From Macrostomum lignano (Eukaryota), in the NCBI GenBank assembly GCA_002269645.1, contig NIVC01001837.1:62001-126000 (forward strand): 64,000 nt of DNA, written 5' to 3'. The position numbers and the translations under genes were made by a program. Shown one piece after another: positions 466 to 36,530 of the stretch. The notes beneath the pieces were generated by a model that had not been told where the DNA came from, ran no database searches, and was given only the letters and a program-made list of their open reading frames with translations. Positions within the stretch are counted from its first letter, which is position 1; each line of letters opens with the position of its first letter.

Positions 466-671
466 ATGGCAGAGGGCAGCCACCGCGCGATTCCAAGAAC
501 TTTTGGCGCTCTGGCAACTTTAATGAGTGGCTGCAGCGGTTTGAGCTGTGTGCAGCAGCCAACAAGTGGACAAATGACAAACACCTGCATCTGCCAACGT
601 TTCTGGATGGCGAGGCTCTGGTGGCCTTCCTTGAGCTCAGCGACAAGGACAGAGCGACTACAGTCAGGTGA
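466..671 (+). pseudogene. gag: Frameshifted, truncated gag N-terminus
   Basis: ATG at 466 (MAEGSHRAIPRTF), then after a frameshift SGNFNEWLQRFELCAAANKW...HLPTFLDGEALVAFLEL, a typical Gypsy gag N-terminal motif. Truncated at about 670. Confidence 0.7.
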
Positions 672-15779: not shown

Positions 15780-18700
15780 TTAATCGTTGGTTTCTAACAT
15801 GTTCACTCGCGCCAGGGCGTGGACTGTGGAACCTTCTTCAGAACAGAGACAGTAAATGTATGCATGTACTTGCACTCGCCTTGTGCCGAACTGTTGCTGA
15901 AGGCTCCCGGCTGCAGAGCTGGCCTGAAATGTCGGGCTTGCAGGGCTGCATCCGCCCTTGCAGTTGCACCGGCGCTGGAGCAACTGGGCGAGCAGACCGG
16001 ACAGTCGGCGTTGGAGCTTCCCAGCCTCCGAGCTGAAGTAGCGCTGCTCCTCCATCAGAAGCAGTTCGTCCTGCTCACCAATGTTGTGCTCAACGAAATC
16101 GGCGCCCAGAATCTCCTCTCGTATCGACATGCGGACCCCCATGGTCACTTTCAGAAGCTGAAGGAGATGGGCGACCGTTGATTCTCAGCTAAGATCCTCA
16201 GCACTGAGACAAGATCCTCAGCCCTGAGACAAGATCCACAGCCCTGAGACAAGATCCTCAGCCCTGAGACAAGATCCACAGCACTGAGACAAGATCCACA
16301 GCCCTGAGACAAGATCCACAGCACTGAGACAAGATCCTCAGCCCTGAGACAAGATCCTCAGCCCTGAGACAAGATCCTCAGCCCTGAGACAAGATCCACA
16401 GCCCTGAGACAAGATCCTCAGCCCTGAGACAAGATCCTCAGCCCTGAGACAAGATCCTCAGCCCTGAGACAAGATCCACAGCCCTGAGACAAGATCCACA
16501 GCCCTGAGACAAGATCCTCAGCCCTGAGACAAGATCCACAGCACTGAGACAAGATCCTCAGCCCTGAGACAAGATCCACAGCCCTGAGACAAGATCCTCA
16601 GCCCTGAGACAAGATCCACAGCACTGAGACAAGATCCTCAGCCCTGAGACAAGATCCTCAGCCCTGAGACAAGATCCACAGCCCTGAGACAAGATCCACA
16701 GCCCTGAGACAAGATCCTCAGCCCTGAGACAAGATCCACAGCCCTTAACCCTAATGCTCAGCCGTCCTGCCAGACTGCCAGAAACCACAATCAGATAAAA
16801 GAATCCAAATTGACAGAAGCCGCTCACCCCCAGCGACAAGAAAGTGATGACGGCACTCCAGCACCCGATGCACAGGCAGGTGAGCAGCTGCACGCCCAGC
16901 AGTCTGAGTCCACCGCCGTGGAACAGGCCAATCTGCCCATTGTTCATGTTCTCCACTGTGTCAGTGTCTACAAACAGGCCGCAAGCCAGCATGCCCTGAC
17001 CAGGACAGATGGCATGGAGGCAACTTCTTGGACTCAAGGAAAGATAATTTAATTACTTACAGAAAACCCATCACACTGGCTGAACTCATATTCCCACTCA
17101 CTTCAATGAAGTACGTTGAATAGACAGAAAAAGTGTTACAGCCCATAACACAAGGCAAGAAAACGCACCAACTAAATCCACGGCAACACAACCCACAGCA
17201 GCAGCACAACCCACAGCAGCAGCACAACCCACAGCAGCAACACAGCCCACAGCAGCAACACAACCCACAGCAACAGCACAACCCACAGCAGCAACACAAC
17301 CCACAGCAGCAACACAACCCACAGCAACAGCACAACCCGCAGCAGCAGCACAACCCACAGCAGCAACACAACCCACAGCAGCAGCACAACCCACAGCAGC
17401 AGCACAACCCACAGCAGCAGCACAACCCACAGCAGCAGCACAGCCCACAGCAGCACAACCCACAGCAGCAACACAACCCACAGCAGCACAACCCACAGCA
17501 GCAGCACAACCCACAGCAGCACAACCCACAGCAGCAGCACAGCCCAACAGCAGCAGCACAACCCACAGCAGCACAACCCAACGCACCCACAGCCCGCCGA
17601 ATCCGTGCACCGGGATGGCCGCTACGGGGTCGTCCAAGCGGATTTTGTCCAACAGAGGCTCCGCTAGCACAACAATGAGGCCGCCTATCAGGCCGATGAT
17701 GAGGGCCTCCCAGGGCCGGACAATTGAGCAGCTTGCTGTAATTGTGACGATCGAACTCAACTGAGCAGGAGCAGAGTGGGGAAGCTTCTCAAATTACGGA
17801 GAAGATCACAGAACTCACCGGTGACGGAGACCAGCCCAGCCAGAACGGAGTTCACGATGTCGTTTATCTCGAACTTGCCTTTGTTCATGATAAACCTATT
17901 GTTGTGGGTTTAAACTTCTCGGCAATCAGATATACTAATGCATAAAAATGCCACCTAAAAAATCAAAACTGATCAACTTACGTGAAGCAGATTCCACTGA
18001 GTCCCCCACCCATGGAAGCATTTAGTGTGGTCACAGCGGCCCTACAATTAGGAGAAAGTTACTGGCACTTTACCAATCAGCAAGTTCACATCATACCGAC
18101 ACTTTACCAATCAGCAATGTCACATTATCACCGACACTTTACAATCAGCAATGTAACATCACTACCGACACTTTACCAATCAGCAATGTAACATCATTAC
18201 CGACACTTTACCAGTCAGCAATGTCACACCATTACCGACACTTTACCAATCAACAATGCTACACCATTACCGACACTTTACCAATCAACAATGTCACACC
18301 ATTACCGACACTTTACCAATCAGCAATGTCACTTAAACGGCACTTAAAAGTGGATAAAGTTCGTTATCGAGAGCATCACAATCAGTCTGGGTTACTGTTG
18401 AAAACCCAAGCCAAACTCACTTGGCAGCCAGCTTCCACTTGCCGTTGGAGATGCCGAACGTGCTGCCGCAGTTGAACGCCAGCCAGCCCCACCTGTTCAA
18501 GTTGAAAAATTGACCCAGCGGTGAATTTTTGGTGAATACGAATTTTAGTCCCTAGAGCCACTCACCACAGCATGAACATGCCAATCATGGCGTTTGTGGG
18601 ATCGCCGCTCTTGGGAAACTCGCGGCTCGAGTCGTAGCGCCCCAGCCGGGGCCCCAGCATCCAGGCGGCCACGGCGGCCGACACGGCGCCGAGAAAGTGC

Positions 18701-21161
18701 ACAGCCCCGGAGCCGGCGATATCAACGCAGCCGAGACGGTGCAGAAAGCCGCGCCGGTCCCAGACCCAGTGGGCCGGGATGCAGTACACCAGGGTGTTCA
18801 CGAAGGAGAACACGATGTACGAGTCCAGGCGAGCTCGCTCGGCCATCGCGCCGGACACTATGGTGGTGGCTGTGGTGGCAAAACTGCGGGGGCATGAGAA
18901 CATCATTTTGGGCGATTGACCTTTTCGGATGCTTGGCACTACGCGGTACTGGAGACCGTCTTGCTGTACAGCACGGAGAACTGGAGAGCCGATGTGGCAA
19001 TGCTGGAACAAAGCGATCGATTGTCAGGCGTCGTGACCAATGTCATCCTGGCCCGGTGACGGCGGCTGCCTGACTGGGCCAAGTCCCAGCGCGCGGTCCG
19101 GACGGAGCCTGTGTTGTTTACTCTCAGCTTTTTTTGCTGTTTCCTGCAGTTTTGCTGCTGCTGATGAGGACGATATCCTACTTGACTCAAAGACATGTAC
19201 TTTTCCTTCATCCATGGCAAGTACTTCATTCATCACTTCAAGAAGAGCAGCTCCTGCAAAGTTGCCTCCAGTTCGATGTAGCACCACATCCTTCTTTCAC
19301 CAGGCCCTGTAATCTCCTCTCGTTTTTGCAAAAACTAACCGATTTTTTATTATACTTTTGCACCCGAGGTGTACAGGCAGTGAACCTGTCTTACTACTAG
19401 TAAGCTCGTACAAGTAGTAGATAAGCATTGGATTACCGGGTTGGAATATTCGAATTTTAGAAGTATTCATATTTTCAGATTACAATAAATTTTCATCGTT
19501 TTCAATATTATCATATTCATAACTTTTGCTCAGTTTCGCGTTCCTCGTTCCAGACTTCACCGTCCACAACTTCCTCGAAAAACTTTCCTAATAAGCCCCG
19601 TCTTGAAGAGCAACCCGAGAGCCGCTACCTCAGCTGGAATACGAAGGTGGCGAAGCTCGTGCCCATGTCCGGGGCCCCGGGGCTCCGGTCTACGAAGAAA
19701 TCGCCCCAGCCGGAGAAGCCGCCCGCGTTGTCCTTGCCGAATGACAGCCCGTAGCCGAACATCCAGTAGGAGATGCCGCCGAACACCACGTCGACAACGT
19801 TCTTCACCATGATGTTTACCTGGTTCTTCAGTTGTACGTTGCCAGCCTCCAGCAGTCCGAAGCCTGCAGGAGAAAGTCAGCGGTGCAGCTTTTGTTCCTG
19901 ACGATATTATGTTATTCAATTGATGAAATACATATATTTATACGTAAAACTTTACAGCTAATGGCGAACTTTCCATCAGTATTTGCCATATCTATTCTAT
20001 CTGTCTCGCGCTGTCTTCGAGTAGACAAAAACGCTTTGCATAGCGGGAGTGTGAGGATGACAGCGATAGTCTATAGCCAGCACCATTACATAGCGATAGT
20101 CTATGGCCAGCCCCATTACATAGCGATAGTCTATGGCCAGCACCATTACATAGCGATAGTCTATGGCCGGTCCCATAACCACGCTGGCAGAAGCTGGACC
20201 TTTGCTTTTCGGCTTTAACTCGAAAAGTTTAAAATTAGGAAAATCTGAAGGCCCGAAATCCAAGTTCTGTTCCTGTAAATTCCGATTCCCGTGTATCGAG
20301 TCCCGATTCCCGTGGATCGAGTCCCGATTCCCGTGTATCGAGTCCCGATTCCCGTGGATCGAGTCCCGATTCCCGTGTATCGAGTCCCGATTCCCGTGTA
20401 TCGAGTCCCGATTCCCGTGTATCGAGTCCCGATTCCCGTGTGTCGAGTCCCGATTCCCGTGTATCGAGTCCCGATTCCCATATATCAAGTCCTAATTCTC
20501 GTGTATCGAGTCCCGATTCCCGTGTATCGAGTCCCGATTCCCGTGTGTCGAGTCCCGATTCCCGTGTATCGAGTCCCGATTCCCGTGTATCGAGTCCCGA
20601 TTCCCGTGTGTCGAGTCCCGATTCCCGTGTATCGAGTCCCGATTCCCGTGTATCGAGTCCCGATTCACGTGTGTCGAGTCCCGATTCCCGTAAATGGCAT
20701 CCCGATTCGCGAATTTCGAAATTCCCGAAATTGCATGTAAGAGTCTTAAATGTCTAATCCTTGATGTCTGCATCTAATCGCATATAACCGTGTCCGGATC
20801 TCAAAATGTCCTGAGTCTTAACTCCTGAATCTCAAAATGTCAAAAACCTCAGGGACGTGCCAGGATCATCCTTGATCTCAATCTATGGTCTGCCGACCTA
20901 CAACACAAGTCAATGTACTTGTAGAACCATAGTCTCAAATGCATGTATCATTCAATAATAACCCGTTTTAGGCGCTTTGGCTCTATAGCCTTCCCCAGGC
21001 TCACCGGACTGCATGGTGAAAATGATGAAGCTGCAGGCCAAAATCCAGGTGGCATCATCGTGAAGGACAACCTCGGTAGCAACAGTTGTTAGGGCCCGAT
21101 CAATCGTAGTTATATTAACCATTGCACCGCCACTGCCAGTTGTGCTGTCCAGGAATGACAT
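15780..21161 (-). CDS. amt: Ammonium transporter (Amt family), multi-exon
   Basis: Exons 21161-21005, 19863-19629, 18883-18566, 18492-18421, 18041-17982, 17895-17819, 17735-17587, 16995-16828, 16157-~15780, all GT-AG and phase-consistent. Motifs MQSGFGLLEAG, KNVVD, FQLSFATTATTIVSGAMAER, DIAGSGAVH, WWGWLAFN, DDPVAAIPVH, EEILGADFVEH. A further Q-rich terminal exon 15472-15178 is possible. Confidence 0.93.
16192..16742. repeat. 20-bp minisatellite (GCCCTGAGACAAGATCCTCA) ~27 copies, Amt intron 8
   Basis: Directly visible; fills most of the intron. Confidence 0.95.
17180..17580. repeat. 15/18-bp CAG-rich minisatellite (CACAACCCACAGCAGCAG), Amt intron 7
   Basis: Directly visible; starts immediately after the exon-7 donor. 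Confidence 0.95.
18060..18330. repeat. ~35-bp minisatellite (CCGACACTTTACCAATCAGCAATGT...), Amt intron 4
   Basis: About 7 imperfect copies. Confidence 0.9.
18915..19020 (+). mobile_element. Degenerate RTE-like LINE fragment in Amt intron 2
   Basis: Plus frame reads AVLETVLLYSTENW, matching the post-RT motif VLLYG(S/C)ETW of RTE-clade LINEs. Confidence 0.45.
20281..20700. repeat. 21-bp minisatellite (CCGATTCCCGTGTATCGAGTC) ~20 copies, Amt intron 1
   Basis: Directly visible. A short 30-bp repeat also lies at 20070-20170. Confidence 0.95.
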
Positions 21162-21169
21162 TGTGAGGT

Positions 21170-21735
21170 CTAGATATTCAGCTTGTAGATCCGGCCTGAA
21201 GAGGGTCTAGATCAGCTTGTAGATCCGTCTTGCGGAGGGTCTAGATCAGCTTGTAGATCCGTCTTGCGGAGGGTCTAGATCAGCTTGTAGATCTGGCTTG
21301 CGGAGGGTCTAGATCAGCTTGTAGATCTGGCTTGCGGAGGGTCTAGATCAGCTTGTAGATCTGGCTTGCGGAGGGTCTAGATCAGCTTGTAGATCCGGCT
21401 TGCGGAGGGTCCAGATCAGTTTGTAGATCCGGCTTGCGGAGGGTCAATATCAGTTTGTAGATCCGGCTTGCGGAGGGTCTAGATCAGCTTGTAGATCTGT
21501 CTTGCAGAGGCTCTAGATCAGCTTATAGATCCGGCTTGCAGATGGTCTAGATCAGCTTGTAGATCCGGCTTGCGGAGGGTCCAGATCAGCTTGTAGATCT
21601 GGCTTGCGGAGGGTCTAGATCAGCTTGTAGATCCGGCTTGCGGAGGGTCTAGATCAGCTTGTAGATCCGGCTTGCGGAGGGTCTAGATCAGTTTGTAGAT
21701 CCGGCTTGCGGAGGGTCTAGATCAGCTTGTAGATC
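21170..21735. repeat. 34-bp minisatellite (AGATCAGCTTGTAGATCCGGCTTGCGGAGGGTCT) ~16 copies just upstream of the Amt ATG
   Basis: Directly visible; begins about 10 nt upstream of ATG 21161. Confidence 0.95.
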
Positions 21736-22710
21736 CTTTTCCTGATGAAGCCAACACTGTATTAAAAGTACACCAGCCAGCTCATCGCTGAGCCCCGCCT
21801 TTTGAGCATGAGTCGACTTGTGCTCAAGCTGTGAGTGTGTAAAATTATAGGTAGTAATAATGGTAGAAACACGAGACGTCACGTACTTAGCAAGGTAATA
21901 TGACACCCTCCGCACTACTGCTTTAGGAGCAATGTACCTGTTTTAGGCTTAAGAATCCTAAACTAATGACAAGTCTCAAGATGGATAAACGATGATATCT
22001 GATACTAAGTGACAAACTTTTAACTGAATAACGAATCTCTTTTAAGTTCTGAAATCCCCATCTCAGAATCCGAAATATCATCTCCAAATCCGAAATCCCA
22101 ATCTCAAGTTCCGAAATCCAAATATTTTAAAGTTTCAAAATCCTAAAATCTTAAGTTCCAAGATCCCAATCACAAAAATCGAAATCCCAATCTCTGGCTT
22201 TGAAATCCCAATCTTAGGACATATGTAGCCATGAAGGCTTGGCAATTTTAATTTATTGCAGAAAAATTATTTTTTTGGATTTTAATAAATGAGACGGTTT
22301 ATTTATCAATAATAACGAAGTAATAAAACTCTAAGCATTGCTAAAAAGTGACAAATTTTGATTATTAAAGTACACCACAAGGCAAGCAAGCGGTACAATA
22401 GTTACGCATGTACATGTACCAGTACAGCAGACTTACAGTTCGACATGCCAATCTGAATCAGCGCGCGTGAAATTGGGGCAGAAAATGCAAGCAGAAAAAA
22501 AATAATATACTCGCATACAGCCTCAATATTTACAGGCTTCATTGCTTGTTGAGTTGCGGCACGAATACACGCGACCGAACTACTATTAGTAGTATTGTAG
22601 CGAGTTTCATTTCACTCCAGTTTATCTACAGTCTATGAAACGATCTCTAGAGAATTAATTATCCGCGCGTGTCGACAGCTGTTGACATCTGCGATTTGAA
22701 AGTCCAGGGT

Positions 22711-23694
22711 TCAGACAGTGGTCAGTTCAACAGTGTCGCTGCTGACGGCGGCGGTTGTGGCGGCAGCGGTGGCGGTGCCAGCGTCGTTGCTCTGCTGTCG
22801 GTGTCGTCGGCGCTTGTGCCGGTCGGCAACAGGCGCCAGTCGCCGGCACGCCTGCCAGGCGTCGGACTGGCCGGCCGCAACCAGCAGGCGGCGCAGTTCG
22901 CCAACTGTGGCGGCGGCGGCGGCGACGGATTCGGAGTAGCGACGCAGGAGGAGGCCGGCGGGGCTGGTGGAGTCAGCTCGGGCGCGGGACTCCAGCTCGG
23001 AGACGGCGTCAGCGTTGTTGCCTGAAGAGAGGTGGGTAGCGATGTATTTTATTGCGCTAGTGGGCAAACTACTCTACTGATAGTAGGAAGGGCCGCAAAT
23101 GCAATTATGATGCTTTCCATAGTATAGATAAAACTGAGCTGCAGTCCCTGCACTGCCCTGAGCTGCAGTCCCTGCACTGCCTGAGCTGCAGTCCCTGCAC
23201 TGCCTGAGCTGCAGTCCCTGCACTGCCTGAGCTGCAGTCCCTGCAGTGCCCTGTGCTGCAGTCCCAAAGACCGCCAGACTCACCCATCTCAGCTGCCAGA
23301 GCTTTCCAACCATTTCGACAGTCCAGCGCCAGCTCCAGACACCTCAGTCGCGAGTCGGGCAAGTCAGCCAGCGGCAGCGCATCGTCTGGAAAGTCGTCTT
23401 TGGCTTCGAAGTCGGGGACAGCAGCCTCGGTCAGCGGAGCGGTGACGTCGGCTGTGTGCGGCGAGTGCGACGGCGGCTGCAGCTTCGAGTCGCGGCCGCG
23501 GCTGCGCGCGTGCTTGAGCACAACCCAGAGCACCAGGCCGCAGATGAGGGCGCCAAGGAGGCCGCAGTACAGCGGGATCAGGTTGTTGGCGCCCGCGTTG
23601 GGCGCTCTGGACGGAAGAGGCTGCGCCAGCGGCTCTGTGTGATGGGGAACGGGGAGGGAACTGGCGTTGATAGATGCTGTCTCATTGGGGAGAT
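22711..23694 (-). CDS. p75NTR/TNFRSF16 (NGFR/NRADD)-like receptor: stalk, transmembrane helix and death domain (last two exons)
   Basis: Exon 23694-23284: P/S/T-rich stalk, NNLIPLYCGLLGALICGLVLWVVLK (cf. p75 DNLIPVYCSILAAVVVGLVAYIAFK), then LDCRNGWKALAAEMG. Exon 23021-22711: NNADAVSELE...SPAGLLLRRY...ATVGELRRLLVAAGQSDAWQAC (death-domain pattern). Phase-1 GT-AG join is consistent. Confidence 0.8.
23135..23265. repeat. 23-bp minisatellite (CTGAGCTGCAGTCCCTGCACTGC) in the death-domain intron
   Basis: 5-6 copies visible. Confidence 0.9.
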
Positions 23695-24419
23695 CTGGGA
23701 GAGTGGTTGGGGAAAGAAAAAGAAAAATTAGGCCAAAATCCACGCCTCATGAAAGCCAACCCCTAAACTGATTGACTGACTACAAGACTGATTACAAAGG
23801 CTTACAGATTACAGTTCTCTGTACAGAGTACAGTTTACAAAGTTGTCAAATGCACTCAGTGTCTGAGTTTTATCAACTGCCGATTCCACAGCCCTAAGGT
23901 CTTAGCGACAGACCGTCAACCTGGAGGAAAAAATGGACAGTTCAGAACACCTAGCAAAACAAGCATGGAGTTATCTAACTCATATTTCATAATCAACGGT
24001 TTCGATGACAGCACAGAATTCACGTAGAAGATTGAAAGCAACCCAAACAGACGGAACCCAGGCTCCTTATCGCGCCTCATCAATCAGTAGCTACCGGAGC
24101 GGCCCCCGGGATTCTCGGTGGGACAACAAATCGCTGCCTGTTACGCAATCGCATCGCGACTGACTCGGATGAACGCGAAACACCAGGCGCAGACAGTCGC
24201 AATATAGAAGTCAGCCACGAGTATACAAGCTACAGATAAGGAATCTGTTTGACTATCTCTTAGGACAAGGAAACAATTCACTTCAAGGAACAACCAACTC
24301 TTAGCCAAACCCACACTGCATACACAATGAGGCCGACTGCAGGTTTTCAGTTTCAGATTGGGGAGTTTTTCTGCGTCATGTTTTGCATTTGTAGAATAGC
24401 TAGCTTCTGAGTCTCAGTC

Positions 24420-24775
24420 CTCTCTTTTGAGTCTACTGTCTACTCTTTTGAGTCTACTGTCTACTCTTTTGATTCTACTGTCCTCTCTTCTGACTCTACT
24501 GTCCTCTCTTTTGAGTCTACTGTCTACTCTTTTGAGTCTACTGTCTACTCTTTTGAGTCTACTGTCCTCTCTTCTGACTCTACTGTCCTCTCTTCTGACT
24601 CTACTGTCCTCTCTTCTGACTCTACTGTCCTCTCTTCTGACTCTACTGTCCTCTCTTCTGAGTCTACTGTCCTCTCTTCTGACTCTACTGTCCTCTCTTT
24701 TGAGTCTACTGTCCTCTCTTCTGAGTCTTCTGTCCTCTCTTTTGAGTCTACTGTCCTCTTCTCTGAGTCTACTGT
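24420..24775. repeat. 21-bp minisatellite (CTACTGTCCTCTCTTCTGACT) ~17 copies
   Basis: Directly visible. Confidence 0.92.
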
Positions 24776-25369
24776 CTCCCCTCTCCGCTTTCCTACCTCA
24801 CTCCGCTAAAAGCGACACGTCGCGACCAAAAAGCCAGGGAACCCGGAGCATTTGGCCGGCACTGCAGCACAAAGCAAGCATCGAAAGCCATTCAGCAAAG
24901 AGATCGTGAGCGGGTTTGGCTGTTGCCTCAGGCATTCTTGTTGCCATAGTGGGGTCAGCCGAGGCTAACTGAAGCTACTGAACGATAAATCAGTGACCAG
25001 CCTTTGGCAGGCGGGCGGGCGGGCAGCACTGCAGCGGCCCATCTGCTGCAAGTCCTGCAGGGTCCGCCGTTTCTGTCCGAACTGAATATTCATTTCCTTT
25101 TAGCCCGCACCGCCATCCGCGCGCCTGACGCAAGGGCCCAGCCCAGCCCAGCCGGCTAAGACTGATGACGACGCCCAGAGGCTGGGCGACCAGGTTCTCC
25201 GATTGGGGATCGGAGGGCAACGGTGCATGGGCCGAGCTGGCTAGAGGCATGCGTGTGAAGCATTTCTGGAAAATGCAAAGCTGTTTAAGTACGCATGTAC
25301 TTTAATAAAAAATAAGCTCAAATAGTTGCACGCAGCATCAAAGGGACTTCCGGGATTCTCCGTAGCGCT

Positions 25370-25560
25370 TTTAAGGGATTTCAGGGGGTTCGCTCAGGGA
25401 CTTCGATGATTCTTCAAGGGGATTTCAGGGGATTCCTTCGGGGACTTCAGACATTATTCAAGGGGATTTCAGGGGATTCCTTCGGGGACTTCAGACATTA
25501 TTCAAGGGGATTTCAGGGGCTTCTCTGAGGGACTTCAGGGATTCTTCAAGGGGATTTCAC
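25370..25560. repeat. ~44-bp tandem repeat (TCAAGGGGATTTCAGGGG...) ~4 copies
   Basis: Directly visible. Confidence 0.85.
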
Positions 25561-27240
25561 CTTTAGTCTTTTGGGGATTCGGAATCAGGATTTGCAAGCT
25601 TGCTGCAATTCTGGACTCTGGATTAAAGGCAAGAAAAATCAGGGCCATAAACGGCAGCATCCCCCAGCAGAATGATTTGTTGCACCTGCCAGAAGTCCCC
25701 CCCACCCCGAGTAGCGCCATCCCAACTTTGATAAATAACAATAGCGGGCAATAACCTTCCTATGGTCTATGCTTGCGAACTGCTTAGCCATATATTAGCA
25801 TGCAGGCAACCCCCGGCCAGCGAACACCTTTTAAATTAGGCGGAGTGTAGTTGGAGTGGAGCGGGCGTATGTCGGTGTGTGTGTGTGTGTGTGGTTAAGA
25901 CCCAACCCGCACCCAGCGCCCGAACACAGTCAGAAATATATGGGGCTTGCGCAAGCGCGGTCCCTTTGTGGCGCCGCCCGCCGCTGCGCGGCTAAAGGGC
26001 TGATGGGGTTGGCGGCCGCCTCTGTGAGTCAAAAATAAGAGAGGCCAGCACCAGCCGCCCCAGGATTTTACAACCCGAAAAAAGTTTTTATTGCCAATCC
26101 TCCGTCCCGTTGGCCTGGGCTATCCAGAAAAATTAAGCAGCGAGTGAGAGAGAGATCAAAGGGGCCGCTAAAGAGAGAGCAGCCTTATTTAAAATGAACC
26201 AGACTGTGACTGTCTGTCTACCTGGGCCCGCGCCTCCCCAAGATCATATTAGCATTTTTTATCGTGATTTACTGCCACCTTGCGGCCTAGACTGGCTGGG
26301 AGGGAGAGAGAGAGTTTAGCATTCACTAGCTGCTATTATAGAACTGTTACAATCGCAGAACTGCAGGAAATTAACGGCGAAAATGGTATTAAAAATGAAT
26401 CAATTGGATATCATTTTTACCGATGAAGTTTTTAATAACAGAATTTTTTATTTATTATCCCCGGGGGAGGCAAACTGTCTGGGACTGACGGGCCCAGATT
26501 GGGGACACGGGAAGGGCCCAGATGTGGGACGGCGCTCGTCAACTCAGCTATTTTATATAAGTAGTCGCAGAGAGCCAATTAATTCTTTCAAAGCTTTCGT
26601 TTTCTGACGCAGAACAGCCTCTTGGAGGATGGAGAGGATGGCTGGGAATCTGGAGCAGTAAAAAGAAAGATGGAGAGAAAGACGAGACGAGAACAGGGGT
26701 AGAATGGCTGGTATATAGTGTTTCTAGGACCTACGAACTCTCGTAATTCTAAACAGAGGGGCGGGTTCCTCCCCAGCTAATGGCTCTACACTTTGATGAC
26801 GCCCCGGAAACTGCGCAACCGCCTCGTTTGTCAAGTGGAAAATTGAATGGTTTGCATTCTTAAAATACTCGTAATGCGAAATCAAGGGCAAGGCTGCTAA
26901 TCTGCTATGCTGTTAATGTAACTGTAGCTTGTGACACGATGTGGTGCACTTGCAGCCTATATGGGCCTTGATTTTCGTTGATTATTACATTCAATTTAAA
27001 TTCGTGCCAAAACGGACATCGTTAAAATCGTTCCGGTTATTCCCCAAAATACAATTAGGCTTAAGAGTAAGTGAATACTTTCAGGACTTCATAAATTAAA
27101 ATGTGTTTACTGTTTAAAGTTAGTTTTCAAGGCGTTCAATGATGATTAAAAAGTTAGTTTTTGGCGCGAATTTGAATTAAACAATCAAAACCATAAAGCA
27201 CTCTGTGACGTCAAAACGGCACAGCTATATAAACACGAAC

Positions 27241-27424
27241 CTTCAGTCGAGACAGCGGCGGTGAAGTTCTTCAGTCGATCTTGCACCAGGCCGTTGTCAA
27301 TCAGCACCTTCCAGTCCATCAGCGAGGAGCCGCCGCCGCCGCCGCCAGCATCAACCGATGACGCCTCGGACGAAGCAGCTGCACCGGCACTGCGTTCGCT
27401 GACTGATGCCGCTGCTGGTGGCAT
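27241..27424 (-). CDS. Candidate upstream exon of the p75-like gene
   Basis: GC-rich ORF MPPAAAS...SLMDWKVLIDNGLVQDRLKNFTAAVSTE ending at GAAG|GTTCGT, phase 1, compatible with the phase-1 acceptor at 23694. The linkage is unproven. Confidence 0.35.
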
Positions 27425-28034
27425 GGACGATCTGTCGCGAGCGTGGAATAATCTTCGAAATCTTGGTTGGGATTAATTGGTTCCTTGCAGAGTCTGTGTG
27501 GGCAATGGCTCTGTTGCTAGTGTCGGCTTTTTAAAAGCTTTTTTCTGGCCAATGACAGAAGAGCACTGACTAGTGACTTGCAGCTTTTGCCCCGACCATG
27601 GACCGCTAAAGAACTGGATTGGATATAGCCGAGAATCTTCCGTCTTCACACAGATTGCTGAATATTAGGAGCGCTGCGCAAATTCATTATACTTCTTAAT
27701 CTTGATGGATTTCAAGTAACGATATTCACACAGTAAAATTATATTAGCAAAATCAGTGAAGAGCTGAAGAACTCTGCAGGCTGAACGATTTTTCCTATCT
27801 CTGTATATTAGGCGCACGGGTCCGCTTCCAGTCCAGACATCTATAGAGGTCTCTGGCCCGACGGTGCAGGAAATGAAAATTCCCTTGTTAGCCAATGGCG
27901 AGCGAGCAGTTGGACAGCCTTCTGACAAACTTGGGAGACTATAAAACCAATAATTGTATTATAGATCCATTCGAAAACCGCATCATAAGTCTCAATAAAA
28001 TTACGATGTAACATGATACAGCTACTGAGCGTCT

Positions 28035-28555
28035 TTGGCGCCGAACTCGGCTCTGTTTGGAGCGCTATAAAATAAGTGTCATTGGCGCCGAACTCGGCTC
28101 TGTTTGGAGCGCTATAAAATAGGTGTCATTTGGCGCCGAACTCGGCTCTGTTTGGAGCGCTATAAAATAAGTGTCATTGGCGCCGAACTCGGCTCTGTTT
28201 GGAGCGCTATAAAATGGATGTCATTTGGCGCCGAACTCGGCTCTGTTTGGAGCGCTATAAAATAAGTGTCATTGGCGCCGAACTCGGCTCTGTTTGGAGC
28301 GCTATAAAATAGGTGTCATTTGGCGCCGAACTCGGCTCTGTTTGGAGCGCTATAAAATAGGTGTCATTTGGCGCCGAACTCGGCTCTGTTTGGAGCGCTA
28401 TAAAATAAGTGTCATTGGCGCCGAACTCGGCTCTGTTAGGAGCGCTATAAAATGGATGTCATTAGCGCCGAACTCGGCTCTGTTAGCTCGTAGGAGCGCT
28501 ATAAAATAGGTGTCATTAGCGCCGAACTCGGCTCTGTTAGCTCGTAGGAGCGCTA
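28035..28555. repeat. 47/48-bp minisatellite (GGCGCCGAACTCGGCTCTGTTTGGAGCGCTATAAAATAAGTGTCATT) ~11 copies
   Basis: Directly visible. Confidence 0.95.
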
Positions 28556-29189
28556 GAATCCTTTATTTGTTTTGTCAAAGCCAAAAAATAAAAAAGTCAA
28601 AATCGCAAACATAATTAGGTGGGAGGGGGTTTAAAGAGCTCACAGCTCGGCACCAACTCAATTCGAATCGAATAGAAGAGGGTCGTGACTATCAATACAT
28701 TTTAGTCAGTTTTATGACCCAGCCAGCCGGTTCAAAGCAGCTTGGGCGCGCAAGTGTACACAGCAATTTATCAGTACCCTTTTGCCCCAGGCCTATATAC
28801 GAGTGAGCACGACATGGGTTAACAGCCAGCGGTGTAGCTACGAGAGGCCAAGTATAGAACAGCCGGCCTTTTGAGTCACTCATCAGCTTTTTGATCTTAC
28901 CGCCCAAGATAAGAGGGAGAGGCGGGGGCGGAGTAGTATAGGGGTGGCGGTTTTTGTTTGAGCGCCCACTGCACAGCTATGGCGGCGGCTACCATGAAGC
29001 TGTGTGAGCAATGTTATAAGGATTTTCGGTCAATATTAATAATGAGGAGGATAATTATATCGAATGAGCCTGTCCAGAGACTCACAAATTCAGGATAAAC
29101 AGCAGAGCAGACTCCTTCCGGTTTAACAGTAAGCACCCAAGGCCGATTCTATGATGGTAGCTCTTGCATTCCATGTAACAATGGGCCGA

Positions 29190-29670
29190 AGTGCCAACAT
29201 CGTGGGGAGTCAGAGAGCGCCAACATCTCACGAAGTATCAGGATTAAGAAACGCCAACATCCTGGAGTGTCAGGGGCGCCAAAATCTTGGAGAGTCAGGA
29301 GGCGTCAACATCATGGTGTTAGGGGGCACCAAAATCTTGGAGAGTCAGTAGGCACCAAAATCTTGGAGAGTCAGGAGGCGCCAACATCATGGTGTTAGGG
29401 GGCGCCAAAATCTTGGAGAGTCAGTAGGCACCAAAATCTTGGAGAGTCAGGAGGCGTCAACATCATGGTGTTAGGGGGCACCAAAATCTTGGAGAGTCAG
29501 TAGGCACCAAAATCTTGGAGAGTCAGGAGGCGCCAACATCATGGTGTTAGGGGGCGCCAAAATCTTGGAGAGTCAGGAGGCGCCAACATCACAGTGTCAG
29601 GGGGCGCCGAAAACATGACGTGTCAGGAGGCGCCAACATCATGGTGAGTCAGGAGGCGCCAACATCGCGG
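29190..29670. repeat. Compound 24-26-bp minisatellite (GGCGCCAACATCATGGTGTTAGGG / GGCACCAAAATCTTGGAGAGTCAG)
   Basis: Alternating related subunits visible. Confidence 0.9.
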
Positions 29671-30079
29671 AGTGTCAGGGTGGGCCAGCATGCATTATTT
29701 ACGACATTTTCGCCACTTTAATAACGGCGGTGCACCCGATTTCGGACAGCACGGCCTCAAACGCAATTTAACTGTCTCATATTACCTCCAATTGAAGAGT
29801 GAATTTAGTAGTACAATCCAGTCCAACCAAGTATTTATTAATTATGAACAGGCAACCAGGATCTTAGCATCCGAGAAAAGGTACTCGTACATATCAGGGG
29901 ACAAGTTTATTTGTTTACAAATTAAAACCAAATTGAAACGAGCAAAGAAATGCAAATTTATAGAAGACATCAGCATCGTTTTACAAAAATACCATTTTAC
30001 CAACTTAGCTACTTAAAAGTAGCGTAGTAAGACTTTTTGAAAAATTGCTGCTATTTTGACTTAAAAAATTACTTATTCT

Positions 30080-32330
30080 CTAATTAGAATGCGACTTGGT
30101 CACCATTGCAGCGGACAGCTCAGTCTGGAAGGTGTCCACTGTCGCTGCCGCCACCTCAGCAGCCAGCCGATCACGCTGGCGCCGGTTGCAGAACCAGGTG
30201 AGAACAACTGGCTTAGGCAGGCCGAGGCGGCTGCTCAAAGCCGCCGAATCGGCTTTTGACAGATGCGGCGTGTGCAAATAGTGGCGCTCGAGCTGCGCCA
30301 ACTGGGCGCCAGACGGCTGGCAGCGGGGGCGCCGGGCGCGCCGCTGTCGGATCAGCCGAGTCGGCGGCCCGACGGTGCCAGTCTCAGCTGCGCTGGCCGC
30401 GGCGGCTACGATGGAGTCGGCGGCCTCGGGACCGAGCAGCTCGCGAGCCTCGAGGTCGGCCAGCCAGCGGCGCAGCAGCGGCCAGACGTCGGTCATGTTG
30501 TCCAGACTGAGGTCGGCCAGCTCAAAGCGGCTGAGCATGCCCTGGCTGATTGTGCACTTGTACAGCCGCTCCATTGCCAGACAGGCGTCCAGCTGCGAGT
30601 AGCCCAGCTCCTCCCGGCGCCGGCGAAACCGCTGGGCAAAGGCGGCCAGCTCCGCCATGCTGGCGCCGGAAGGTCCGGCTGCGTCGGCGGCAGCGCTGGC
30701 AGCCGACTGCTGACGGGCCGCGTTGGCTGGCAACTCGGCGATGCTGGCGCTCATCGAAGGCGCCAATAACTTGGTGTCGGCAGCATCGGCCGCGGCTTCG
30801 GCGCCGGCCCGCGGCAACAGCAGGAACTGCTGCCTATCCGGCGGGTACTGGCGGCAGCTCAGGCTGGGCGGCTGCTCAACTGGCACGGCATTCATGCGGC
30901 CGTCAATCAGGCTCTGGGCCAGGTGCTCCACCTGACGCTGGGTTACTAAGCCGCATAGAGGCACAAGAATGTCTGGCCTGTTAAATATGATTGTGCGATG
31001 TCAGTAATGATGGCCTCTTAGTCTCGATGCCGTATACTCTGTTTGGGGGTGGGTGCCACTCTATTTGAGGCGTGGGTGCCACTCTATTTGAGGGGTGGGT
31101 GCCATTCTATTTGAGGGGTGGGTGCCATTCTATTTGAGGGGTGGGTGCCATTCTATTTGAGGGGTGGGTGCCATTCTATTTGAGGGGTGGGTGCCATTCT
31201 ATTTGAAAGGGTGGGTGCCACTCTATTTGAGGGTTGGGTGCCATTCTATTTGAGGGGTGGGTGCCATTCTATTTGAGGGGTGGGTGCCATTCTATTTGAA
31301 AGGGTGGGTGCCACTCTATTTGAGGGTTGGGTGCCATTCTATTTGAGGGGTGGGTGCCATTCTATTTGAGTGGTGGGTGCCATTCTATTTGAGGGGTGGG
31401 TGCCATTCTATTTGAGGGGTGGGTGCCATTCTTTTTGAGTGGTGGGTGCCATTCTATTTGAGTGGTGGGTGCCATTCTATTTGAGGGGTGGGTGCCATTC
31501 TATTTGAGTGGTGGGTGCCATTCTATTTGAGGGGTGGGTGCCATTCTATTTGAGTGGTGGGTGCCATTCTATTTGAGGGGTGGGTGCCATTCTATTTGAG
31601 TGGTGGGTGCCATTCTATTTGAGGGGTGGGTGCCATTCTATTTGAGTGGTGGGTGCCATTCTATTTGAGTGGTGGGTGCCATTCTATTTGAGTGGTGGGT
31701 GCCATTCTATTTGAGGGGTGGGTGCCACTCTATTTGAGGGGTGGGTGCCATTCTATTTGAGGGGTGGGTGCCATTCTATTTGAGGGGTGGGTGCCACTCT
31801 ATTTGAGGGGTGGGTGCCATTCTATTTGAGGGGTGGGTGCCATTCTATTTGAGGGGTGGGTGCCATTCTATTTGAGGGGTGGGTGCCATTCTATTTGAGT
31901 GGTGGGTGCCATTCTATTTGAGTGGTGGGTGCCATTCTATTTGAGGGGTGGGTGCCACTCTATTTGAGGGGTGGGTGCCATTCTATTTGAGGGGTGGGTG
32001 CCATTCTATTTCGGGGGGGGGGGGGCACCAGCGCTTTAAACAAGAGGTCTTCAAAGATGGTATCAAGGGGGTGCCATATGCTTTTGCCAGTCAATTGGGT
32101 GACCTGTACTGCGTGGTTTGGAACAAAAATCTGGCACAATCTCTCTATCAAAATTGCATAGACACTGGATTTTACCTGTAGGTTCGACCAGAGAAGCGCA
32201 GGCGCACTAGGGTAGCACCAGCTGCATCAGCCAGGCCAAACTGCTCATTTCTGGGCACCTGTGCCAGTCTGAAACTGGACAGAACTTCTGCTGTTGAATT
32301 TGACTTCCTTTTGCTGGATTTAGAGTCCAT
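30080..32330 (-). CDS. Divergent POU-class homeobox transcription factor (~350 aa)
   Basis: Main exon 30977-30080 has a POU-specific domain (ELAAFAQRFRRRREELGYSQ...LY...ISQGMLSRFE...LSLDNM...PLLRRWL) and a homeodomain ending VVLTWFCNRRQR. Candidate exon 1 (32330-32176, AG|GTAAAA, phase 2) joins the TTAACAG acceptor in frame; exon 1 is less certain than the domains. Confidence 0.85.
31040..32010. repeat. 23-bp G-rich minisatellite (GAGGGGTGGGTGCCATTCTATTT) ~42 copies
   Basis: Directly visible; lies in the predicted POU intron. Confidence 0.96.
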
Positions 32331-33178
32331 TGGATTGAAATAGCTGAGGATTGTGAAAGGGGAGACTCTGTTGATGTTTACCAAAAGTATATATTGCATA
32401 TAATATGTTTTCTAGTCATAATTTTACAAAATATTAGTCTTCAGTGATTTAATTTAACAGAAAAGCACAATAAAATAAGCCTGGGTTCTTAAGTATCAGA
32501 ATTGCAGAGCCATTTGGTATCAATTGAAAATTTCAAAATTAAATATAATGCTATGGCTCATATGGGGAAATTGCTGAGATTCCAAGAGTCAATTGGGAGT
32601 TGTTGATAGGCCAAGCACCAAAGGGAGGCTTTGATGTCAAAGCTCAAAGTGGTGCTAATATGTAAGGCTAGATAGCTAGCTTTAGCATAGATGCTTTTTG
32701 AATTAAACATATTTTTCTTCAGTATATTAATAATAGTGAATATAAAAACCCAATAGCTATATTTAGTTTATTCAAAAAAATATCTAGTTTATTCCTTTTT
32801 TGTTGTCTACCTAATGCAGAGGATAAAAAAAAATCATTTTTAAGTGTTAACACTGTATATTTTTAGTGCCAACTTGAAAAGAATTTAACTAAGAAAAAAT
32901 GCATATAATAACTTCATCTTGATAATTATATTAATAATTATAATAATTTTAAAATAGGGCTGAACCAACTACATATTGATTTCAGCAAAACTGGACTCAC
33001 AAAGCTACTACTAGTAATTTTGAACTTGTGCTTTAATATTTCTTTTGGTTTCTTATTAAAGATGTGATTGCCAGCCAACTTGGCTAATCTAGCTTGCAAC
33101 AATGTAAGTTGCAAAAGGAATAAACAAAGTTATATTTTTGTCAAAACAAAGTTTTATGGTTGCTATAATTTCAGAGGT

Positions 33179-33228
<50 letters not shown>

Positions 33229-33989
33229 TCTGATTAAAGACTATGTGATATTTGCCTGATTGATTCTTTTTATAGCTTTTTGAAGTATTATAGATTAAAT
33301 TAATAGTATTATAGGCCTATTTGATCTTTCCTAAAGCAATCTTATCACTGGTCTATTACCACTAAGTTATAATAAGGCTTTGCTCTGCTGTTCTTATAAA
33401 ATCCTACTGCTTGTGCTAAGTTGTTGCAAATGCATTTTCTATTATGAAATATCCTTTTAGTTTTATTCCTATTCTATCATTAAACTGCTTATTAAACTAA
33501 AAAGACTATTGTTGGTACAATTTACTATTAGTAGTGCTAGTGCCCAAGTGGCAAAACACTACTAACTGATTCTATTTTCCAAAATTATTTTACTAATGAT
33601 TGATAGGTAAATTGATAGGCTTCTTTTAAGGAATTACAGTCTATCACAACTTATTAATGCATTATGTTAATATGTCTAAGCAACACACATATATTTCTTA
33701 GGGATTCTCAAATTTTTACCTAGCACTAGGCAATCTACCTTTTATACTCTTTATATATGTTTTATTTATTAGACACTTATTTTATAGGCAAAATACCTTT
33801 TTTGACCAAAACAGTCTTTGCTTTGCAATCACTACTTTAATTGGCATATGTACTAGGGGTATTCTACTATACCCCTAGTACTCTAACCAAACCAAACCTA
33901 GTACTCTAATCTAACCAAAACCCTCTCAGATCCTACTGCTGCCACCAAGTTGTACTAGGGGTAGAGATTATAATAAGATAAGAGATTAC

Positions 33990-34125
33990 AAAGATAAGAG
34001 GGGAGATGAGAGACAGAGGGGGAGAGAAGTTAGTTAGTGAGGAGAGAGGAAAGGAAAGAGGAGAATGGAGAAGGGAGAGAGTAGAGGAGAAGAGAGAGAG
34101 AGAGAGAGAGAGAGGGGGAGAGAGA

Positions 34126-34161
<36 letters not shown>

Positions 34162-34450
34162 CAGCTGAGAGAAATAAGAAGAGAAAAAAGAGAAGAGAAA
34201 AGAAGAGAGATGAAAGATAAGAGAGTATACACAAGAGAGAAGAGAGGTGAGGTAAGAGATCACAGAAGAAAGGGAGAAAGGAGAGAGAAGAGAAGAGATA
34301 AGAGAGATGAAAGAGGAGAGATGAGGGAAGGTATGGGAGAAGAAGGGAGAGAGGTGAGAGGAAAAAGGAGAAAAGGTAAGAGGAGAGAGGAGAGGAAAGA
34401 CAAGGGACAAGAGAGAAAAGAGGAAACAGAAGAGAAGATAGAAGTTGCAA
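33990..34450. repeat. (GA)n / purine-rich low-complexity tract
   Basis: Pure AG runs at 34093-34157 with purine-rich flanks. A (TA)n run lies at about 33180-33225. Confidence 0.9.
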
Positions 34451-35349
34451 AGGATTCAAGGGACATAGGGAGAGTCAGAGGCAGAGGCCAGAGTTTGCCA
34501 ATACATGAAATCCTAATTTTATACAATTGTAGGCCTACTCCATTTTATGTTTACCTTATCCTACTAACTATTAACAAGTTTTTGTTTAAGTATGGTCCCA
34601 AATACAATAATACATGCAAAAACAGTTCCACAGATTAGAATTCCCCAGGTTCAAAATCCACAGGTTTCAACAGCTTGTAATATGCAAAAGTGTATAGTAG
34701 TAGTAATAATAGTAGTTAAGTTTGGCTCAGGCAAGAAGCCTGTTTGGCCAGTATACATTAGTATATTTAATAAAAAATTCAAGAGTAGAAAGAAAACCCT
34801 ATGTATAAGTACAAGTTTTGCAATAATAGAGTATTTGAAAAAGTGCCTAAATTTTTCTGAAACTTCAAACAAGCTTTAACAATTAACAAAGCAAAAAATA
34901 TTTAAGTAAGGAATTAAAAAACAAGTATTGTATGAACTTGATGTATAGCAATTCAATTGATCCTGTAGGTGATAAAAATGAGTATGTAGGTATTAATCAG
35001 ATAAAAACAATTTTTTATTAAGTATGGTATTTGAATGTGTCTGGGATTTTTTTGTAGTAAATGTGATAATTTTAAATACAAGCAATTTAGACAAAAAGCA
35101 ATCTAGTGTGGCCCCCTTCGGGGCGCCCAATAAGAACGAAGCAAAAATAGTTTATGGAAATCAATGAAAAAGCACATTTTCTTAAAAACTAAGTCCTTCA
35201 TCACTTTTAAAAATCACCTTATTCATTTAAAATTGTCATGGACAATAATATTTGCTATGAATCTCTTTTTTTCTAAAATTAACAAACAGACAAGAAAATA
35301 TAGCTTTCACAAAGATCACAGTCATTACCCCTAAATAGAAAATATTCCC

Positions 35350-35900
35350 AAGACAGCAAGCATCCCCCCAGTAGCAAGCACCCTCCTCCAAAAGTAAACA
35401 ACCGCAGATAGCAAGCATCCCCTAATACTCCTAGCAAGTATCCACCCAGATAGCAAGCATCCCCTAATACTCCTAGCAAGTATCCACCTAGATAGCAAGC
35501 ATCCCCTAATACTCCTAGCAAGTATCCACCCAGATAGCAAGCATCCCCTAATACTCCTAGCAAGTATCCACCTAGATAGCAAGCATCCCCTAATACTCCT
35601 AGCAAGCATCCACCCAGATAGCAAGCATCTTGCAGATAGCAAGCATCCCCCAAATAGAAGCATCCCCCGGATAAAAGCATCCACCCAGATAGCAAGCATC
35701 CCCCAAATAATGTAGAAGCATCCTTTCAGATAGCAAGCATCCCCCAAATAATGTAGAAGCATCCTTTCAGATAGCAAGCATCCCCCAAATAATGTAGAAG
35801 CATCCTTTCAGATAGCAAGCATCCCCCAAATAATGTAGAAGCATCCTTCCAGATAGCAAGCATCCTGCACATAGCAAGAATTCCTAAATAGCAAGCATCC
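35350..35900. repeat. 41/42-bp minisatellites built on TAGCAAGCATCCCC
   Basis: Two adjacent sub-arrays visible. Confidence 0.9.
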
Positions 35901-35954
35901 CTGGATAGAAATAATCCTATACATGTAGCCAAGCTTATCAAGCGCAGTAATTCT

Positions 35955-36530
35955 TGGCTATGGAGTGAAGTAATCCTTGGTTTATTAAGACCAATAATCT
36001 TTGGCTTATCGAGTGCAGTAATCCTTGGTTTATTAATAGCAATAATCCTTGGCTTATCGAGTGCAGTAATCTTTGGTTTTCTAAGTGCAGTAATCCTTGG
36101 TTTATTAATAGCAATAATCCTTGGCTTATCGAGTGCAGTAATCTTTGGTTTTCTAAGTGCAGTAATCCTTGGTTTATTAATAGCTATAATACTTGGCTTA
36201 TCGAGTGCAGTAATCCTTGGTTTTCCAAGTGCAGTAATCCTTGGTTTATTAAGAGAAATAATCCTTGGCTTATTGAGTGCAGTAATCCTTGGTTTATTAA
36301 TAGCAATAATCCTTGGCTTCTCGAGTGCAGTAATCCTTTGTTTTCCAATTGCAGTAATCCTTGGTTTATAAAGAGCAATAATCCTTGGCTTATCGAGTGC
36401 AGTAATCCTTGGTTTATTAATAGCAATAATCCTTGGCTTCTCGAGTGCAGTAATCCTTTGTTTTCCAATTGCAGTAATCCTTGGTTTATAAAGAGCAATA
36501 ATCCTTGGCTTATCGAGTGCAGTAATCTAA
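35955..36530. repeat. ~24-bp-subunit compound minisatellite (GCAGTAATCCTTGG core)
   Basis: Directly visible. Confidence 0.9.

Follow-up and report, generated by a model that had tools for sequence, protein, structure and literature searches.

A probable NRADD-like paralogue of the p75NTR-type receptor, without cysteine-rich domains, in the flatworm Macrostomum lignano

What kind of receptor joins the membrane segment of the neurotrophin receptor p75NTR to a death domain and carries no recognizable ligand-binding module? The question is raised by a 64,000-nucleotide stretch of the Macrostomum lignano genome (assembly GCA_002269645.1, contig NIVC01001837.1, positions 62,001 to 126,000; hereafter the window), whose minus strand holds the three-exon gene Mlig015487.g1 with its 281-residue product PAA63506.1. 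We consider this gene to be probably a truncated, lineage-specific paralogue of the full-length p75NTR-like receptor of the same species (Mlig018038/Mlig009773), encoding a single-pass protein devoid of cysteine-rich domains (CRDs) that would serve as an NRADD-like partner. The stalk, a p75NTR-type transmembrane (TM) segment with its cysteine and an AxxxG motif, the death domain on the cytoplasmic side and a -T-V at the C-terminus have been kept; the signal peptide is gone, and so is each of the four cysteine-rich domains that bind ligand. GenBank and UniProt already list the protein, uncharacterized, as 'TNFR_16_TM domain-containing' or 'Death domain-containing', and the gene identifier Mlig015487 was not found in literature searches.

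PAA63506.1 matches the window at 100% identity across three exons by tblastn, which bears out the earlier suspicion that the host is a flatworm and identifies it as M. lignano. Joining three minus-strand segments (27241-27424, 23284-23634 and 22711-23021) at exact GT-AG junctions regenerates all 281 residues, and gives the following gene structure:

27241..27424, minus strand: exon 1, residues 1-61 plus 1 nucleotide; 100% identical to PAA63506.1 by tblastn
27424-27422, minus strand: start ATG of Mlig015487.g1, in exon 1
23635..27240, minus strand: intron 1, GT...AG, 3.6 kb, with 21-nucleotide and 22/44-nucleotide minisatellites and no CRD-like open reading frame (ORF)
23635..23694, minus strand: 60-nucleotide in-frame stretch behind the candidate acceptor cccag/AT, adding 20 residues (DLPNETASINASSLPVPHHT) and lying outside the annotated model
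23284..23634, minus strand: exon 2, residues 62-179, with the stalk end, the TM helix, the juxtamembrane linker (disordered) and the opening stretch of the death domain
23022..23283, minus strand: intron 2, GTGAGT...CAG, splitting the death domain
22711..23021, minus strand: exon 3, residues 179-281 plus the TGA stop at 22711-22713

A preliminary description of this stretch had placed a p75-like TM and death-domain protein at 22711-23694. Its lower boundary is right, falling on the last base of the stop codon, while its start is wrong, the TM exon beginning at 23634, and exon 1 at 27241-27424 had been overlooked, as the tblastn match of PAA63506.1 and the GT-AG junctions make clear. We rejected 23694 as the main acceptor because the annotated protein and the junction in the paralogue (..RTE/EPV.. 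against ..STE/EPL.. here) fit 23634, and retain it only as a possible alternative in-frame acceptor. The 60 nucleotides in question are identical in all three M. lignano copies of the gene (g1, g2 and g3) and, if used, would add two more N-glycosylation sequons (NET, NAS) to the stalk.

The region is eukaryotic in character. Read on the minus strand, 22711-23694 gives ...NAGANNLIPLYCGLLGALICGLVLWVVLKH... and then a death domain interrupted by one GT-AG intron (23022-23283), with a GTGAGT donor at 23284/23283 and a CAG acceptor before 23021. Splicing of exons 2 and 3 yields ...NAGANNLIPLYCGLLGALICGLVLWVVLKHARSRGR..., an acidic and Pro-rich linker of about 50 residues, the death domain (...GWKALAAEMGNNADAVSELE...TVGELRRLLVAAGQSDAW...) and a basic, low-complexity tail that ends in ...VELTTV. 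Exon 1 contributes a non-hydrophobic, Ala/Gly/Ser-rich N-terminus and then the stalk segment LMDWKVLIDNG...NFT...STE.

A TM segment with an intramembrane cysteine, followed by a death domain, had been proposed from the sequence as the mark of a p75NTR/NRADD protein, and both parts of that proposal hold. Pfam TNFR_16_TM (PF18422) scores 28.3-28.6 bits against a curated cut-off of 25.6 and Pfam Death (PF00531) 28.8-29.1 bits against 22.6, each with E of about 1e-6, in the spliced exon 2/3 product and in the full protein, and the two domains stand in the expected order, TNFR_16_TM then Death:

23507..23587, minus strand: p75NTR-type transmembrane domain, Pfam TNFR_16_TM, residues 78-104 (NNLIPLYCGLLGALICGLVLWVVLKHA)
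23284..23356, minus strand: death domain, N-terminal part, residues 155-179, helices 1-2 including W171, L174, A175 and G179 (Pfam Death)
22840..23021, minus strand: death domain, C-terminal part, residues 179-239, the Pfam Death match spanning residues 169-239

The TM begins NNLIPLYC... and is the only hydrophobic segment of the protein (residues about 80-102). When the single sequence was compared with all PDB chains by phmmer it matched NRADD (6hj7, 7e-7) in one unbroken alignment that opens at the TM and closes with the death domain; three p75NTR TM-domain chains, including 2mic and 5zgg (8e-4), also matched, and nothing credible beyond these. An exhaustive HMMER scan of 1.84 billion representative proteins gave 15 matches below 1e-3, with alignments that span the TM plus the death domain. 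For eight of the ten clusters examined from that scan the name or model is that of a TNFRSF16/p75NTR or NRADD-like protein (M. lignano, Lingula, Patella, Crassostrea, Priapulus, Ruditapes, Ridgeia and rodent NRADD); two remain, an unnamed Logan ORF (P0011, discussed below) and a record flagged UNVERIFIED_CONTAM (P0007). The membrane motif I/F-P-x-Y-C is present in all 14 non-self sequences. The best hits are p75NTR and NRADD proteins, and not UNC5, FADD or ankyrin, and the TM match stands above its Pfam cut-off. Assignment to this subtype is carried by the TM, the overall alignment and paralogy, and not by the death domain by itself. Word-indexed homologue searches reached less far: the single protein found only itself, that is, the cluster of three M. 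lignano proteins, alignment A2 as query added a few more molluscan TNFRSF16 proteins and alignment A4 nothing new, and neither other flatworm relatives nor vertebrate NGFR were retrieved in them.

The predicted structure is consistent with this assignment. AlphaFold2, run with a 21-sequence alignment, gave a model with a mean predicted local distance difference test (pLDDT) of 64, in which a long TM helix covers residues 81-111 (block-mean pLDDT 89-96 over residues 81-100) and a compact six-helix death domain covers residues 155-239 (pLDDT 87-96); the N-terminus, linker and tail are disordered, and the ectodomain has pLDDT below 50. In a Foldseek comparison with the PDB the top structures were the p75NTR intracellular domains 4f42 and 4f44, with target-normalized TM-scores of 0.80-0.84 and root-mean-square deviations of 2.0-2.1 Å, followed by the death domains of RIPK1, Pelle/Tube, ankyrin and FADD. 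The Foldseek E-values are weak (0.06), as disorder affects two-thirds of the query.

Individual residues that characterize the family could also be located:

23564..23566, minus strand: codon of Cys85, the intramembrane cysteine, whose column is invariant in alignment A1
22714..22722, minus strand: C-terminal T-T-V, a class I PDZ-binding-type tail, at the end columns of alignment A1

Cys85 is the counterpart of Cys257 of p75NTR and of Cys58 of p45/NRADD. A90 and G94 stand at +5 and +9 from it, forming an AxxxG motif at what we take to be the offsets of human p75NTR, with the role of the motif presumably that described in the TM papers behind PDB entries 2mic and 2mjo. Residues that are invariant or nearly invariant in the family and are kept here comprise I81, P82, Y84, C85, W171, L174, A175, G179 and D232. 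Nearly every p75NTR/NRADD relative recovered ends in Val, so that the C-terminal T-T-V joins the TM signature, the death domain and the best matches in placing the protein in this group; that T-T-V is a PDZ ligand is our assumption, made from the C-terminal SPV of p75NTR. A second TM cysteine, C93 (23540-23542, minus strand), lies eight residues past C85 in all three copies and is found in neither the full-length paralogue nor any other aligned relative.

The origin of the gene is best read from its nearest non-self relative in the HMMER scan, A0A1I8HNW7/PAA89918.1 (E = 1e-18), the 513-residue product of Mlig018038.g1, which carries TNFR_c6, TNFR_16_TM and Death in Pfam. BLASTP aligns the two proteins from the stalk through the whole death domain (2e-26, 33% identity), and their identity varies between 33 and 39% with the alignment used. 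Homology starts in the stalk, where LMDWKVLIDNG...NFT...STEEP in the window faces LSDWKELIDNG...NLT...RTEEP in Mlig018038.g1 and where tblastn of the paralogue reaches 75% identity over 27290-27325:

27290..27319, minus strand: stalk motif MDWKVLIDNG, residues 36-45 (SDWKELIDNG in the paralogue), at which the BLASTP alignment begins (alignment A4)

At its own locus Mlig018038.g1 encodes residues 1-16 in exon 1, all CRDs (residues 15-200) in exon 2, the stalk in exon 3, the TM to mid-death-domain in exon 4 and the rest in exon 5. Exons 1, 2 and 3 of the window gene correspond to paralogue exons 3, 4 and 5 with identical junctions (..TE/EP.. and ..LG/..); intron 2 occupies the same position as its counterpart in the paralogue (..ELG/..), and exon 2 has the boundaries of paralogue exon 4. 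A small neighbour-joining tree of 178 TM-to-death-domain columns, from which vertebrate NGFR, NRH1 and other flatworm relatives were absent, grouped the window gene with the Mlig018038 paralogue in 86% of 500 bootstraps and with rodent NRADD in 4%. The simplest reading would be that a flatworm p75-like gene was duplicated and that this copy lost the two 5' exons and came to start within the stalk exon. Judged from these comparisons, NRADD and the window gene resemble each other by convergence and not by orthology.

Two further sets of sequences touch on this family history. The gene models Mlig009773.g1 and g2 (P0018 and P0019) start at the stalk exon (MAPTTSPD/ATELSP...) and end early; this may mean that they are fragments, or it may point to an internal start through which the parent gene, too, yields an isoform without CRDs. 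An intronless, transcript-like Logan contig from SRR22388065 contains an ORF (472-1179) for the 235-residue p75-like TM and death-domain protein P0011, which has no CRDs, with upstream stops in all frames. P0011 groups weakly with the M. lignano sequences (52% bootstrap) and may be another CRD-less p75-like gene.

The gene had been proposed as a neurotrophin receptor, and in the usual sense of that term it is not one, the protein having no CRDs and none being detectable in the 64-kb window. Pfam TNFR_c6 has no match in the 281-residue protein and does match the paralogue. Stop-free minus-strand segments across 23600-36000 include no Cys-rich ORF between or upstream of the exons, no Cys-rich open segment is found in intron 1 or in the 2.7 kb that separate exon 1 from a POU gene, and the CRD region of the paralogue gave nothing significant by tblastn against the whole window. 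Two weak tblastn matches to the CRDs were discarded, one at 41709-41840 with an internal stop and one at 23117-23272 that is the TGC-rich minisatellite of intron 2. This minisatellite (23134-23265; a 23-nucleotide unit, CTGAGCTGCAGTCCCTGCACTGC, in 5.7 copies) translates Cys-rich on the minus strand and generates spurious weak CRD matches. An in-frame TAA lies 48 nucleotides upstream of the exon 1 ATG, which is the first ATG after that stop, and no convincing pyrimidine-rich acceptor was found between the two. The neighbour upstream is a POU-specific plus homeodomain gene with a large exon at 30080-30964 on the minus strand (Pfam Pou 7e-20, Homeodomain 6e-15); it lies 2-3 kb from the p75-like gene, ending about 2.7 kb away, on the same strand in all three copies. 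Because there are no CRDs in protein or window, the known ligand-binding module is missing; binding of TNF or neurotrophin through CRDs would be impossible, and canonical binding appears very unlikely.

The signal peptide, which p75NTR proper has as a type I membrane protein, is missing as well: no N-terminal hydrophobic segment was found, the highest 19-residue Kyte-Doolittle value being 0.44 for windows starting at residues 1-45. The one TM segment has a net charge of -3 in its N-terminal flank and KHARSRGR in its C-terminal flank, and the positive-inside rule therefore predicts N-out/C-in insertion without a signal peptide (type III). The ectodomain so predicted is about 79 residues long and may be glycosylated, N-glycosylation being a trait of the short NRADD ectodomain:

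27260..27268, minus strand: N-glycosylation sequon N53-F-T, the only one in the predicted ectodomain by regular-expression search, aligned with N-L-T of the paralogue

The three M. lignano copies of the gene are 95-98% identical, and the g2 and g3 loci are collinear with the window, including the POU-homeobox gene upstream. Triplicated copies of at least 95% identity reflect the duplicated chromosomes of the DV1 line (PMC5730564).

Several observations weigh against a maintained, truncated paralogue, and some of them are the very ones on which its rivals build. Both flatworm branches of the neighbour-joining tree are long and fast-evolving, and long-branch attraction may have raised the support of 86% for their grouping. 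In the collections searched the Mlig015487.g1 protein was found on no RNA-derived contig, so the 5' end rests on the published annotation. The death-domain sequence alone has NRADD as its sole PDB match, at a marginal E = 0.099. The juxtamembrane motif (S)DSG(V/I), found in most relatives including the paralogue, is missing, and the conserved death-domain Trp (..LL..W.. helix) is a Tyr. Among g1, g2 and g3, coding sequence (1.2-2.1% divergence) is no more conserved than introns (1.2-1.9%), and Nei-Gojobori ratios of nonsynonymous to synonymous change (dN/dS) run from 0.16 to 0.6 on just 10-18 differences; the three copies are uninformative to mildly indicative of constraint and do not demonstrate it, since copies only 1-2% diverged leave the comparison of coding with intron sequence without power. 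If the gene were a partial duplicate, transcribed but without function (exons 3-5 of its parent on their way to becoming a pseudogene), this would account for the equal divergence of coding and intron sequence, the dN/dS of up to 0.6 and the loss of the DSG motif and the Trp. It would also fit the finding that two very large protein collections yielded close homologues from M. lignano alone, and human NRADD shows that decay of such genes is possible (PMC7828832, PMC8686249). We nevertheless regard it as unlikely. Diverged from its parent to 33-39% identity, the gene has kept its ORF intact in g1, g2 and g3, which differ in length by in-frame indels only; the invariant columns, AxxxG, the stalk sequon and the terminal Val are retained, both Pfam domains score above their cut-offs, and the predicted death domain exceeds a pLDDT of 90. 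That ORF, domains, invariant residues and a confident fold have outlasted such divergence implies long-term purifying selection, and this pattern of retention would be hard to reconcile with a drifting pseudogene.

The gene might instead be an ordinary full-length p75NTR/TNFR orthologue whose signal-peptide and CRD exons were missed, lie far upstream or fall in an assembly gap. Flatworm introns can be long (intron 3 of the paralogue is about 7 kb), and other CRD-less models among the relatives, from Ridgeia (P0006), Lottia (P0031) and Mlig009773, are probably fragments. Against this stand the absence of any CRD-like tblastn match in the window other than a minisatellite and a stop-containing stretch, the in-frame stop 48 nucleotides before the ATG with no convincing acceptor in between, the same-strand POU gene close upstream in all three copies, and the transcript origin of the assembly's GenBank models, for which transcripts were assembled both de novo and with genome guidance (PMC5730564); taken together these make a missed upstream portion improbable, somewhat more so than the functionless duplicate. 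Membership of an unrelated death-domain family such as UNC5, ankyrin, FADD or MyD88-like proteins, with a p75NTR-like TM arisen by chance, might draw on the marginal PDB match of the isolated death domain and on the Foldseek results, where E-values are weak and the death domains of RIPK1, Pelle and ankyrin score near that of p75NTR. We regard this as barely credible, and as effectively refuted by a TM match above the curated cut-off, by exhaustive-search matches that span the TM plus death domain with all named ones being p75NTR/TNFRSF16 or NRADD, and by the exon structure and stalk motif held in common with a CRD-bearing TNFRSF16-like gene of the same species; even the sole PDB sequence match of the death domain is NRADD.

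If Mlig015487.g1 is, as we think probable, a truncated paralogue of the full-length receptor, the likeliest guide to its function is NRADD. p45/NRADD has a short ectodomain without a neurotrophin-binding domain and forms a heterodimer with p75 through TM cysteines, by disulfide, and through the death domains (PMC4122344). By analogy, Mlig015487.g1 would dimerize via the TM Cys85 and its death domain, either with itself or with the full-length Mlig018038/Mlig009773 receptor, and the resulting dimer would damp, tune or redirect death-domain signalling. Ligand-independent signalling or intramembrane processing are alternatives, the susceptibility of NRADD to gamma-secretase being disputed (PMC8686249). 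On this analogy, a role as dimerizing partner or modulator of the full-length receptor seems most likely. M. lignano possesses endogenous TNF ligands (PMC7519573), and a module of ligand, full-length receptor and truncated partner is therefore plausible. A relevance to regeneration had also been suggested from the sequence; nothing in our analysis ties the gene to neurons or regeneration.

The remainder of the window is rich in tandem repeats, and dense minisatellites flank or interrupt the p75-like gene itself (21178-21736, 24404-24776, 28031-28538 and 29252-29500, with units of 34, 21, 47/95 and 26/76 nucleotides), a density consistent with the reported 15% of simple and tandem repeats in the M. 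lignano genome. Other features are as follows:

668-1948, plus strand: retrotransposon integrase ORF (rve 3e-15, Integrase_H2C2), in the GC-rich left end of the window
2984-8502: 5.5-kb satellite, 30-nucleotide unit in 182 copies with 95% matches, free of stops over more than 1600 codons in several frames of either strand and a trap for ORF-based gene calling
16558-19011, minus strand: exons of an ammonium transporter gene (Pfam Ammonium_transp up to 8e-33)
17183-17573: 18-nucleotide minisatellite in 22 copies, open in several frames, which abuts or extends the ORF of one ammonium transporter exon
49834-50256, plus strand: 140-residue ORF matching nearly the whole clathrin-adaptor small (sigma) chain profile (Clat_adaptor_s, 3e-52)

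The preliminary description had called p75-like genes poorly described in platyhelminths, which needs qualification, as Bertevello et al. 2020 catalogued one NGFR-like TNFR per flatworm species, including one with a conserved death domain in M. lignano, and no diversification save one species-specific duplication in another species (PMC7519573). The M. lignano receptor of that survey is presumably the full-length Mlig018038 paralogue and not Mlig015487. In that survey, as in the PITA study, CRDs were the criterion by which receptors were recognized, and a paralogue without them would presumably have been missed. Mlig015487.g1 would add a second, structurally distinct component to the TNF/p75 pathway of M. 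lignano, and would indicate that the NRADD-type architecture (a p75 TM and death domain with no ligand-binding domain) arose more than once. This is of relevance to those who model death-receptor evolution and to TNF and apoptosis studies in M. lignano, which would otherwise knock down one of two likely interacting genes. A bolder proposal, which we hold only tentatively, is that the flatworm arrived on its own at an NRADD-like partner, blind to ligand, for its p75NTR-type TNF receptor through duplication and loss of the signal-peptide and CRD exons. Should a Cys85-linked heterodimer or constitutive death-domain release prove true, the truncated p75 partner would be a recurrent, convergent means of tuning death-receptor output, and M. 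lignano, with its TNF ligands (PMC7519573) and available transgenesis (PMC5730564), would be a tractable invertebrate system in which to follow such partners in stem-cell-driven tissue turnover.

Among known systems, the closest in descent is the full-length Mlig018038.g1 receptor, with which the window gene shares its species, the DWK-LIDNG stalk, an N-x-T sequon, exon junctions, TNFR_16_TM and Death. The paralogue differs in its two extra 5' exons, one with all CRDs, in its DSG motif and in its C-terminal -C-Q-V, whereas coding in the window gene begins with the stalk exon and has a new 5' end. Vertebrate p75NTR/NGFR/TNFRSF16 and the protostome orthologues (Lingula, Patella, Crassostrea, Priapulus, Daphnia, Platynereis) have in common with Mlig015487.g1 the TM signature (I/L)IP(V/L)YC, AxxxG at +5/+9 from the Cys, the terminal Val and a death-domain fold that is closest to p75NTR; unlike them, Mlig015487.g1 has no signal peptide or CRDs and does not conserve the chopper/juxtamembrane region, and identity is 22-29%. 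Mouse s-p75NTR, produced by exon skipping, is likewise a p75-type receptor that has lost most CRDs and kept the TM and death domain. It retains the signal peptide and CRD1, and is an alternative transcript of the same gene, whereas Mlig015487.g1 is a separate, diverged gene.

Closest in architecture is mammalian NRADD (also NRH2, p45 or PLAIDD; PDB 6hj7, 2ib1), the best PDB sequence match, which likewise has a short CRD-less ectodomain, a p75NTR-type TM with its Cys, a linker that leads into a death domain, and an -x-V tail at the C-terminus. NRADD too came from a CRD-bearing p75-like gene by N-terminal loss, a deletion in its lineage having removed N-terminal structures that NRH1 retains (PMC8686249), and the loss in the flatworm would be an independent one. 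The two are not orthologous, in the sense of descent from the vertebrate NGFR/NRH duplication, judged by the 4% of bootstraps that join them against the 86% that join the window gene to its paralogue, and share about 27% identity; Mlig015487.g1 has the longer ectodomain (about 79 residues) and the second TM cysteine C93, and the juxtamembrane region is not conserved between them. We would see in Mlig015487.g1 not a new kind of system, but a p75NTR/NRADD-group protein whose NRADD-like architecture arose independently.

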